The position numbers and the translations under genes were made by a program. From sequence record OQ363659.1: a stretch of DNA of 64,000 nt, one strand, 5' to 3'. Shown piece by piece: positions 54,269-60,310 of the stretch. Within the stretch, counting starts at the first letter, position 1; every line of letters starts with the position of its first letter. Below the pieces are notes generated by a model. It had not been told where the DNA came from. It did not search any database and saw only the letters and a list, made by a program, of their open reading frames with translations.

Positions 54269-54337
54269 TGAGGAATCCTTGTTAGCTATAGTTCAAACCA
54301 TAAGGTACTTGAGTAGAACAAAAAAAAAATAAAGGGC

Positions 54338-57514: not shown

Positions 57515-58150
57515 ATGAATCTCCCAACTCAATCGGCCATGGCCGCTACCCTGCAACTGGCTGAAACCATCTCTCAAGTACGTAGTGTTACTCGTGATGG
57601 CGATGTGGTTAACGTCAATGTCGCCAACGATGTTGACTATGCTGAACAACCAGCAACCCTGGACAATCCAATCAACAAAGAAGTCGCTCTCGAAGTCCAA
57701 TCTTTTGTGGCCCAGAAACTTCTGGATACACAAGGCTGGGCCATCCTTCGTAAGCTGTTCGAAATCACTAATGAAATGATCGACACCACCAAACTGTTCG
57801 TTCTGCCAGTAATGTCTCAGGAAGCTCTGCTCCGTGAGAAACTGGGGGAACACTTCGATGCCTTCCACAAGGACTTCGAAGCAGTTCGTGAAGATCTGGC
57901 AACCATGGCTGGCACTCTCGTAGCACTGTCCAAGCAGCACTTGGAGCGCAAAGGTGAAATCAGTGATACTGATAAGATCCTGATCGCTGAACTCGCCAAC
58001 GGTTATAGCAACCTTCAATCTCAAATGGAAACCAAAGTCGGCCCAGAGCTGATGAAACAAATGGAAATTCTGGAAGTAGCCGGTATCGGTGCAGATGTTC
58101 TGTTCGCAGCCCTGCTGCAACTCCAGGAGACTCCTGAGGAAACGCAATGA
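57515..58150 (+). CDS. conserved helical protein, phiKZ gp78-like
   Basis: AAGGA RBS; TATG at 57476-57479. Confidence 0.7.
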   Translation: MNLPTQSAMAATLQLAETISQVRSVTRDGDVVNVNVANDVDYAEQPATLDNPINKEVALEVQSFVAQKLLDTQGWAILRKLFEITNEMIDTTKLFVLPVMSQEALLREKLGEHFDAFHKDFEAVREDLATMAGTLVALSKQHLERKGEISDTDKILIAELANGYSNLQSQMETKVGPELMKQMEILEVAGIGADVLFAALLQLQETPEETQ

Positions 58151-59778
58151 GTAATGATTTTCACGATGACGACGACTACCAAGAAATCGATCCGGCACTA
58201 GCCGTTCATTTCGAACAAGTCGCACCTGCTCCGACTTATGAAGTCGCCGCTGAACCCGAATCCATCACACTGGAGGCTACCGATCCGGTAGCCCCTGCTG
58301 TGCCGCAGGAAGAAGAAGAAACCGTTGACCAAGGTGACGAGGAAACCCTCGTACCGTTCACTCCTGCACAAAAGAAAGTCAACTTCAAGATCGAACGTCC
58401 TGTTGACTCTGAACGTATTCCAGCTGCTGTAGCTATTCTGCAACTGCTGCGTGAAAACCCTGAAACCTTCGATGAAGTTCTGCGTGTACACCGCCAGTTC
58501 TTCTCTGACGTGGAAGGTGGTGAAATCGCTACCGAGCAATCTGACCTGGAGTGGTTGGAAACTCTGCGTGATGCTATCGAACACATGGACATGCATGGCA
58601 CGCCTCGTCGGGCTACTTACCGTGAAGGTTCGGAATGGCGTCAGTTCTTCGAACACAACGGTCGTAAGATCGGTCCATCCCGTCCGAAGATCAAACTGTC
58701 TGATAAACCAGCCAAGTCTGACCTGTTGGCTTACCTGACTCGTAAGTCTGGTATGGGTGCTACCCATGAATATCCAATGCCACACACCGGTATCTGGGTA
58801 CGTCTGCGTACACCAACCAATACCGAAGTAGCTAACATGATCCAACGTCTGCAAAACATCGCAGTTCGTTTGGGCCGTGCTACCAAAGGTCAAGGTTTCT
58901 CCAACCGTATCGCTGTGTATAACAATGCACTGACTGATTTGGCTCTGCAATGTATCACCCATACCAACATGGCTGCTACTACTCCAGGCGACATCGAACA
59001 TCGCCTGAGTGCACTGGACGAACCTCTGTTACATCATGCGCTGGCATCGACCATGTTCCCTGGCGGTTTCAACTATCGTCATACATGCATCGCCGATCCA
59101 TCGAAGTGCAACCACGTCGAAGAAGCTAAGCTGGACATGTTCTCGCTGACTTGGTTCGATATCACTCAGCTGGTCGATCGTCAGAAAGATCTGCTACACA
59201 TCCGCTTCAGTCGTCAACTCCGCGCAGAGGAACTCGACCTATATGCACAAGACACCACTCTGGGTCGAAAGCCTATCAAATGGTTTGATGATATTGGCGT
59301 TCGCCTGCGTGTCCCTTCAGTTGCTGAAAGACGGGATGCTGGAAACCGGTGGATTGATGGCGTAGTAGAAGCTTCCCATAGCGCATTTAACGAGGCTCCA
59401 GGTGATGCGAACCGTAATGCATACATCGACCGACTGGGTGCGATTACTGGTGCACGTCAGTACTCTCATTGGGTTGATGCCATCTACCAGCGTGAAGATG
59501 AACATTCGTCTGAAGAGCTGCTGACCGAGAACGAAGAGATCATTGATGAATACCTGTCCAACGTAATGTCGGACAAGAAGTACGCTGCTGCTTTCGAAGA
59601 AGCCGTACTGCAATTCATCGACGATACGATTTTGTGCATGGTTGCTATTCCTTCGTGGAACTGTCCTGTGTGTGAATCTCCAATGGCTGAGAAGTTCCAT
59701 GAACGTTTCGACCACTTGATTCCTCTTGACGTAGTATCGACATTTTTTACCTTGGCGGGCCAGAAAGTCAACCAGTAG
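58147..59778 (+). CDS. conserved protein, phiKZ gp77-like; candidate baseplate/tail assembly chaperone
   Basis: Acidic N-terminus; C..C and CPVC motifs; ends STFF near the C-terminus. Confidence 0.65.
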   Translation: MSNDFHDDDDYQEIDPALAVHFEQVAPAPTYEVAAEPESITLEATDPVAPAVPQEEEETVDQGDEETLVPFTPAQKKVNFKIERPVDSERIPAAVAILQLLRENPETFDEVLRVHRQFFSDVEGGEIATEQSDLEWLETLRDAIEHMDMHGTPRRATYREGSEWRQFFEHNGRKIGPSRPKIKLSDKPAKSDLLAYLTRKSGMGATHEYPMPHTGIWVRLRTPTNTEVANMIQRLQNIAVRLGRATKGQGFSNRIAVYNNALTDLALQCITHTNMAATTPGDIEHRLSALDEPLLHHALASTMFPGGFNYRHTCIADPSKCNHVEEAKLDMFSLTWFDITQLVDRQKDLLHIRFSRQLRAEELDLYAQDTTLGRKPIKWFDDIGVRLRVPSVAERRDAGNRWIDGVVEASHSAFNEAPGDANRNAYIDRLGAITGARQYSHWVDAIYQREDEHSSEELLTENEEIIDEYLSNVMSDKKYAAAFEEAVLQFIDDTILCMVAIPSWNCPVCESPMAEKFHERFDHLIPLDVVSTFFTLAGQKVNQ

Positions 59779-59801
59779 GTCACCAGAACCGTGACCCACA
59801 A

Positions 59802-60266
59802 ATGACACGCCTGTCAGTTGATCTCGCTGATCCCCAGGGGCACGTTACGAACTACTCGTTCGGTAAGCGTCGTCCTCGTGGGGGTGAGCTTGATCGGCTC
59901 TATGCCGAGATGGGTGCCGTAAGACCAACGACTGCTGAGATCATGCTGCGTGAGGCTTACCTGGATGACTATGAGATTCGTCCCGTAGATCGTCCTAAGC
60001 ATCCTTTAGATGTCGTTCGTATGTTCGACAAAGAGGATACGGTAGAAGGTGGTGCAGTACGATCACTGATGCGTAAGTACATTCGCTACAACATCAAAGA
60101 TCAATGGGGTATGAGTTACACAGAGTTCATGGAACTCCCGTATGACGAAGCCATGTTTATCTTGGAGATTGGTGAAGCGGAGATGATGCGTAAAGTCGAT
60201 GACCAGGGTCGACTCAAGCGTGACATGGAACGTGAGATCCGTGACATGCAACGTCAACCGAAGTAA
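59802..60266 (+). CDS. conserved protein, phiKZ gp76-like; chaperone-extension-like
   Basis: WGMSYTEFMELPYDE motif; no Shine-Dalgarno; its frame is open back to 59730. Confidence 0.65.
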   Translation: MTRLSVDLADPQGHVTNYSFGKRRPRGGELDRLYAEMGAVRPTTAEIMLREAYLDDYEIRPVDRPKHPLDVVRMFDKEDTVEGGAVRSLMRKYIRYNIKDQWGMSYTEFMELPYDEAMFILEIGEAEMMRKVDDQGRLKRDMEREIRDMQRQPK

Positions 60267-60279
60267 AAAAAAAATACAG

Positions 60280-60310
60280 CATAAGGCTACCCCGAAGGGT
60301 AGCCATTATG
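60280..60310. terminator. bidirectional terminator, near-copy of 2287-2316
   Basis: GGCTACCC-CGAA-GGGTAGCC with the same flanks. Confidence 0.85.

Follow-up and report, generated by a model that had tools for sequence, protein, structure and literature searches.

A probable programmed -1 ribosomal frameshift at the end of the gp77-like core gene of nucleus-forming jumbo phages

In gpG/gpGT of phage lambda and E/E+E' of phage P2, some ribosomes slip by -1 a few codons short of the gene's end and append an extra domain read in the -1 frame, while the short product is retained. The ratio of G to GT in lambda is 30:1 (PMC5009743), and the motifs of bacterial -1 frameshifts, as given in PMC4066793, include a heptamer class (X_XXZ_ZZN) and a tetramer class (Z_ZZN). 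Here we describe a similar layout in a stretch of 64,000 nucleotides (nt), referred to as the window, from Pseudomonas phage D6 (OQ363659.1), which infects P. syringae and has a jumbo genome of 307 kb. The first gene of the pair in question encodes a protein of 543 amino acids (aa) that is the ortholog of phiKZ gp77, PhiPA3 gp074, 201phi2-1 gp136, Goslar gp081 and RAY gp267 and is called gp77-like below; the label 'gp77' in the papers on Goslar, PhiPA3 and PCH45 stands for other genes. It is followed by an open reading frame (ORF) of 154 aa, which lies in the -1 frame relative to it. On comparative grounds we consider it very probable that the two are joined by a programmed -1 ribosomal frameshift that is conserved across the nucleus-forming jumbo phages. 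An earlier note, made from the letters of this DNA alone, had proposed such a shift at a run of T residues near the end of the gp77-like gene and had pointed to the orthologs as the place to check it.

Junctions between the two ORFs were collected from nine Pseudomonas phages, 36 IMG/VR loci, 12 distant annotated phages (20-28% identity: FLC9, RAY, RP31, Eowyn, KpLz-2_45, RSL2, pVp-JHP1101, 2050HW, Goslar, SPN3US, Huxley and BONAISHI) and three metagenome contigs. This gave 48 distinct junctions, with phiKZ, PhiPA3, 201phi2-1, Goslar, RAY and SPN3US among their members and 22 annotated records in the set. A run of five to eight T residues was found at the same (V/T/L)-F-F codons in all 48, at identities of the upstream protein down to about 20%. 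In every junction the 0-frame stop followed 8-37 codons past the T-run and the -1 frame was open from before the run into the downstream ORF, and the +1 frame was shut soon after the run in all the 22 junctions checked for it. The proposal of the earlier note was thus strongly supported, since both the T-run and the open -1 frame were kept in 48 of 48 junctions. The length of the -1 ORF past the T-run was nearly constant (154-180 codons), with RVTF4 as the exception. In RVTF4 (PQ015378.1) the downstream ORF was interrupted once by a frame change, so that tblastn matched it in two pieces and only the distal part is annotated, and neither the slip site nor the open -1 frame was disturbed at its junction. 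The interruption may reflect either an error in sequencing or a genuine lesion.

The gp77-like protein had matches in 216 phage records (tblastn), and a profile search of 1.84 billion representative proteins returned 1485 family members. Among the best 150 of these 1485 the match ended within about 10-25 residues of the C-terminus, in proteins of 342-652 aa. Naturally fused ORFs were found neither among these best 150 members nor among 22 close homologs. Because no fused form was found and the short product appears to be kept everywhere, the data suggest that both forms matter, as with G and GT.

Conservation of the T-run in the nucleotide sequence also appeared to go further than the protein would require. 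Wherever the first codon encodes Phe it was TTT (42 of 42), and the two junctions with another codon at this position (CTT and GTT) still retained the run. TTT is the minor Phe codon in most gp77-like genes: the rest of the D6 gene has three TTT versus 18 TTC, and that of RSL2 has none versus 18. The joint probability of TTT at the first Phe codon, taken as a product of probabilities uncorrected for phylogeny, was 1e-28.6. A canonical T_TTT_TTY heptamer was present in 22 of the 44 junctions tabulated and an in-phase T_TTN tetramer in all of them. The earlier caveat that the heptamer is non-canonical holds for D6, which has A_TTT_TTT, and is particular to this phage, half of the relatives being canonical. 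Since half are canonical and all have the in-phase T_TTN, the D6 motif is best read as a variant inside a conserved site and not as an oddity.

In D6 the -1 frame is closed by a TGA at 59727-59729 and is then stop-free through the ATG at 59802 to the stop at 60264-60266, with no ATG, GTG or TTG between the TGA and 59802. The sequence and the ORF list agreed with the earlier note on the six T residues at 59743-59748, on this TGA and on the stop-free -1 frame; two details had to be corrected, as the gp77-like gene does not end at the T-run but runs nine codons further to its TAG, and the phiKZ counterpart of the downstream ORF, which had been called gp76-like, is PHIKZ076.4. Runs of T6 were depleted in the window (25 matches vs 45.6 +/- 9 expected). 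Thirteen runs of six or more T were present on both strands, and only the one at 59743-59748 paired a long upstream ORF ending no more than 45 codons on with a -1 frame that stays open over 120 codons or more, so the layout of the D6 junction is more than chance. Taken in D6 alone, an open stretch of 24 codons would be unremarkable, and it is the comparative data that make the case for a frameshift. Other long T-runs in the window are on the minus strand, T10 at 54320-54329 and T9 at 2273-2281, and neither had a frameshift-like ORF layout in the scan.

The region after the slip site is, as judged from the alignments, coding in the -1 frame and has no start of its own. The -1 translations of 44 phages could be aligned beginning with the very codon that follows the T-run, and length changes were in whole codons. 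Most lineages have no start codon at the head of the conserved -1 peptide, and conserved -1 motifs precede any start codon in most of them; in phiKZ about half of the conserved domain lies before the annotated Met. Nucleotide variability was determined from an alignment of 26 sequences. Past the 0-frame stop it was highest at the third position of the -1 codons (1.57 vs 1.08 and 0.94), and in the apparent intergenic spacer alone the third-position entropy of the -1 frame was 1.59 vs 1.08 and 1.12. The overlap of the two frames extends over 37 codons in KpLz-2_45 and 2050HW, and by eye each of the translations looked conserved between these two phages.

The first ATG, GTG or TTG in the -1 frame wanders among lineages from +24 to +255 nt relative to the T-run (phiKZ +255, RAY +204, Phabio +168), and for this reason the annotated starts of the downstream ORF are inconsistent. 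In GenBank they lie anywhere between 84 nt before the T-run and 255 nt past it, with products of 80-182 aa, including an 80-aa internal fragment in phiKZ, a start 84 nt upstream of the run in RAY and a TTG start in 201phi2-1. The products called by metagenome gene callers were 89-156 aa. Neither a frameshift nor the longer protein was annotated in any of the 22 GenBank records inspected, and neither a description of a frameshift in the gp77-like gene nor a report of a trans-frame protein was found in the searchable literature on phiKZ, Chimalliviridae and jumbo phages.

An ordinary pair of genes was also considered, in which the annotated ATG at 59802 would be the true start of the D6 downstream protein and the -1 frame would be open ahead of it by coincidence. 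Re-initiation coupled to a stop close by is frequent in phages, and in the D6 clade an in-frame ATG lies 24 nt after the upstream stop and is the start annotated in GenBank; this ATG speaks for two genes, and some independent initiation may occur in that clade. However, anti-Shine-Dalgarno (anti-SD) duplex scoring found no Shine-Dalgarno (SD) sequence before this ATG, as the earlier note had claimed, the best duplex being +0.2 kcal/mol compared to -3.3 to -11 kcal/mol for 13 neighbouring D6 genes. The same ATG is partly paired in a predicted stem, and protein conservation in the -1 frame covers the 18 codons that precede it. In phages outside the D6 clade no start codon occupies the corresponding position, and the nearest start lies up to 85 codons inside the conserved domain. 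Two independent genes are therefore regarded as improbable. Neither promoter-like nor terminator-like sites were found on the plus strand between the two D6 ORFs, and an internal promoter for the downstream ORF was rejected because none was present there.

Slippage at the level of transcription was judged equally improbable. Here a phage or host RNA polymerase would add one U within the run, and a fraction of the mRNAs would carry both ORFs in one frame. Nucleus-forming jumbo phages use their own unusual RNA polymerases, and the run is as long as T8 in RAY, RSL2, Goslar and L060-L062. Slippage of this kind is expected to give the same protein outcome and the same sequence layout as a ribosomal slip, and homopolymer runs are known slippage sites (PMC5009743). 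On the other hand, the run is only T5, short for a polymerase, in seven of the 44 lineages (PS119XW, Noxifer, pVp-JHP1101, L029, L035, L036 and L042), and it is the in-phase tetramer or heptamer that is invariant and not the length of the run. Transcriptional slippage, and independent initiation within the D6 clade, remain as minor or additional routes.

It is very unlikely that a non-canonical start codon serves the -1 ORF or that ribosomes terminating at the 0-frame stop re-initiate backwards on it. Bacteria do have near-cognate starts, but conservation of the -1 protein begins at the T-run, up to 37 codons before the 0-frame stop (KpLz-2_45 and 2050HW), no conserved near-cognate codon or SD was seen at the T-run, and the selection of TTT against codon bias would be left unexplained. 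A sequencing error or a decaying pseudogene in D6 was rejected, since homopolymer runs are error-prone on some sequencing platforms but the same layout in 48 independently assembled junctions from isolates and metagenomes, with the best 150 of the 1485 relatives unfused, effectively refutes both.

According to the programmed frameshift that we favour, ribosomes on the gp77-like gene would reach the two Phe codons of the T-run, and most of them would continue and stop nine codons on to give the 543-aa product. A minority, presumably small, would slip back one base on the U-run, with tRNA-Phe re-pairing with UUU in the -1 frame; in D6 the re-pairing in the P site would leave one first-position mismatch. 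The shifted ribosomes would bypass the TAG at 59776-59778 and read 172 further codons to 60266. The resulting protein of about 706 aa would comprise gp77-like residues 1-534, leave the last helix of the upstream protein early, enter a flexible linker of about 40 residues predicted with low confidence, and end in the helical downstream domain with its long terminal helix. In this way the frameshift could set a fixed ratio of plain and extended forms, as G/GT does for tail tubes.

Several observations weigh against a programmed frameshift. The whole case is comparative. A potential -1-frame start is present upstream of the T-run in five lineages. The first base of the heptamer in D6 is A and not T, and U-run heptamers are reported to be much weaker shifters in E. 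coli than A_AAA_AAG (PMC5009743); weak shifting on a U-run fits a low-level shift but is no evidence for one. Using RNAalifold, no consensus structure was found over 26 Pseudomonas-group junctions, the family-wide mean folding z was -0.57, and the long-range stem of the D6 type, placed on the alignment of the 26 junctions, gave 72% paired cells with weak covariation. We make no claim of a conserved stimulator in the family, as none was detected by these predictions. Inspection of the junction sequences by eye showed nothing SD-like ahead of the slip site.

A hairpin at 59778-59796 had been noticed earlier as the nearest clear one. It exists, not as a separate element but as the tip of a larger predicted stem-loop (-24.1 kcal/mol, z -1.99 on strand folding) that begins 3 nt past the slip site and pairs the TG of the ATG at 59802. 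The z value of the stem, obtained by shuffling, was about -2.6 to -3.5 in most D6-clade relatives and -1.9 in L016. The D6 stem-loop may perhaps act as a stimulator and as a mask of this ATG. The positions of all features are collected in Table 1.

Table 1. Features of the gp77-like locus of Pseudomonas phage D6 (positions in the window)
Feature	Position	Strand	Basis or remark
gp78-like ORF	57515-58150	+	phrog_14050
0-frame gp77-like ORF, 543 aa (short, standard product)	58147-59778	+	ORF list, translation, phrog_4585
Open -1 frame, 178 codons and stop	59730-60266	+	overlaps last 49 nt of the 0-frame ORF; includes the annotated downstream gene
Proposed slip site A_TTT_TTT (Phe codons 533-534 and the base before)	59742-59748	+	sequence; contains in-phase T_TTT tetramer
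T6 run	59743-59748	+	0-frame codons ACA TTT TTT ACC
Predicted RNA stem-loop	59752-59817	+	outer stem 59752-59760 with 59809-59817; tip hairpin 59778-59796
0-frame stop TAG	59776-59778	+	9 codons past the T-run
Apparent intergenic spacer, probably coding in the -1 frame	59779-59801	+	third-position entropy, protein alignment
Downstream coding sequence as in GenBank, 154 aa, PHIKZ076.4-like	59802-60266	+	phrog_12109

The upstream and downstream proteins were searched and folded separately. The gp77-like protein matched phrog_4585 (E 2e-137). The AlphaFold2 (AF2) model of the D6 upstream protein had a predicted local distance difference test score (pLDDT) of 87.3 and a predicted template modelling score (pTM) of 0.85, and placed both slip-site Phe residues inside the last helix (529-542). 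The downstream protein was modelled at pLDDT 78 as a helical domain with a long C-terminal helix. When the upstream model was compared with BFVD by Foldseek, orthologs came first, followed by about 12 proteins of 225-285 aa from T4-like and other myoviruses that are named baseplate hub subunit, hub assembly protein or hub assembly chaperone. These matches had E values of 2e-5 to 3e-2, probabilities of 0.95-1.0 and target template modelling (TM) scores of 0.45-0.57, a predicted model being compared to predicted models. Against PDB, Foldseek gave no neighbour of the D6 upstream model (best E 1.9). The gp26/gp51-like fold seems to have no solved representative, the AF2 model being confident and no solved neighbour being found.

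Pfam T4_baseplate (PF12322) was the commonest weak match of the family, in three of 79 relatives with a best E of 1.1e-3, and PHROG 150, 'baseplate hub', was matched weakly in two of the 79 with a best E of 1.6e-5. The D6 upstream protein itself had no PF12322 match at E <= 1, the curated score was not reached, PHROG 150 was not matched by D6, and T4_baseplate was not matched when ten named distant orthologs were scanned with Pfam. Both gp26 and gp51 of T4 are classed as hub assembly chaperones, the latter being required for assembly and missing from the particle (PMC3004832). The homolog of gp77 in Churi is listed as non-structural (PMC11849849). The paper on the Goslar virion does not mention gp81 and gp82, and 201phi2-1 gp135 and gp136 carry no mass-spectrometry note, unlike gp138.

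On the basis of the Foldseek result, the weak Pfam and PHROG matches and the non-structural Churi homolog, a role like that of gp26/gp51 is the best functional guess, and it is possible, at somewhat less than even chance, that the upstream body is a non-virion assembly factor distantly related to these hub assembly chaperones. This guess is tempered by the detection of the Churi homolog at 15 min after infection, which is early for a tail-assembly factor (PMC11849849), and by the position of the gene amid RNA polymerase, helicase and head genes and not among tail genes. It is also weakened by the lack of any meaningful Pfam, NCBIfam or PDB sequence match for either D6 protein. The likeness to T4 gp26/gp51 drawn in the earlier note accordingly found some support for the upstream protein from Foldseek and the weak Pfam and PHROG matches, but D6 itself matched neither family. 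For the downstream domain, the proposed likeness to tail-chaperone extensions such as P2 gpE' was not borne out, as it matched only uncharacterised orthologs, in the sequence searches and, as a model, in BFVD.

Four cysteines of the upstream protein, Cys 314, 321, 506 and 509 (C-x6-C and C-x2-C), were invariant or nearly so in 139 relatives, which suggests a structural zinc site. In Myoviridae sp. ctLnO19, Tenacibaculum phage pT24 and an Ackermannviridae contig, BFVD holds both a larger protein similar to the upstream model and a small helical protein similar to the downstream model, and these phages are not obviously chimalliviruses. The two-part arrangement, and possibly the frameshift, may occur beyond nucleus-forming phages, and small helical partner ORFs beside T4_baseplate-like proteins in other large myoviruses are a hint in the same direction.

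In GenBank the D6 locus is annotated as three successive 'hypothetical proteins' on the plus strand, namely the gp78-like, the gp77-like and the downstream ORF of Table 1. The region matches the D6 record at 100% identity, and over the 2.1-kb locus Psa21 is about 80% and RVTF4 about 75% identical to D6. The neighbours of the gene pair in D6 are the gp78-like ORF, a head protein, RNA polymerase subunits, small ORFs and a helicase. The end of the gp78-like ORF overlaps the gp77-like start as ATGA (58147-58150), and a like junction was seen in Psa21, PhiPA3, 201phi2-1 and others, suggesting translational coupling of both genes. Directly after the stop of the downstream ORF there is an A10 run (60265-60274), followed by an 8-bp GC-rich hairpin (about 60285-60304) between convergent genes. 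Read on the minus strand, 60264-60304 comprises hairpin, spacer and T10 and is terminator-like; the pattern scan made no call there. In supplementary Table S3 of the study of the chimallivirus core genome (PMC10299810), the gp77-like gene is core gene cg18, labelled 'hypothetical protein'. The downstream ORF is absent from rows cg1-cg58 of Table S3, yet it was present in every lineage checked.

If the frameshift is real, more than 200 deposited jumbo-phage genomes, including those of phiKZ, PhiPA3, 201phi2-1, Goslar, RAY and SPN3US, would mis-annotate this locus. The downstream 'genes' would have arbitrary starts, and a longer core protein would be missing from proteome lists, knock-down screens and interaction maps. 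A recoding event would be added to the conserved core of nucleus-forming phages, and the function of cg18, which still carries the label hypothetical, would become more accessible to testing. If the link to hub chaperones also holds, the G/GT principle of a frameshift-fixed ratio of two chaperone forms would extend to a second step of tail assembly. As a bolder suggestion, somewhat less likely than not, every nucleus-forming jumbo phage might make a hidden cg18 isoform of about 700 aa by an obligatory, ancient -1 frameshift, with the pair as the counterpart of T4 gp26/gp51 and with frameshift stoichiometry, so far known for tape-measure chaperones (G/GT), also governing baseplate hub assembly.

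Compared with the known systems, the gp77-like upstream protein resembles T4 gp26/gp51 (PF12322; PHROG 150) in its predicted fold, in the weak sequence matches of a few relatives and in having a non-structural homolog in Churi. It differs in that the D6 protein is about twice as long, has the four conserved Cys and stays below every family threshold, and we know of no frameshift described for T4 genes 26 or 51. With E. coli dnaX (tau/gamma) the locus shares a homopolymeric heptamer and two isoforms at a set ratio. In dnaX it is the shorter isoform that arises from the shift, and strong stimulators on either side of the site are a hallmark, whereas the gp77-like shifted product would be longer and has no conserved stimulator that we could detect. 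The orfA-orfB pairs of insertion sequence (IS) elements likewise consist of two consecutive ORFs, the second without a good start, joined by a -1 slip on a homopolymer; their slip motif is an A-run while the gp77-like motif is a U-run, and their protein families and biology are unrelated.

The layout is like that of lambda G/GT or P2 E/E', in which the protein is also probably not in the virion and the arrangement is also conserved across a phage group despite sequence divergence. The gp77-like short product, at 543 aa versus roughly 140, is about fourfold larger, the gene is not beside tail tube or tape-measure genes, and the slip motif is a U-run. Searches of Pfam, PHROGs, NCBIfam, PDB and BFVD gave no likeness to tail assembly chaperones in sequence or in fold. 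Of the earlier comparison with G/GT, the frameshift layout near the 3' end stood, and membership in that family did not because of the size, the gene neighbourhood and the missing homology. The gp77-like pair works like G/GT in layout and is not a member of its family; it would represent a new case of a known mechanism in a new protein family.

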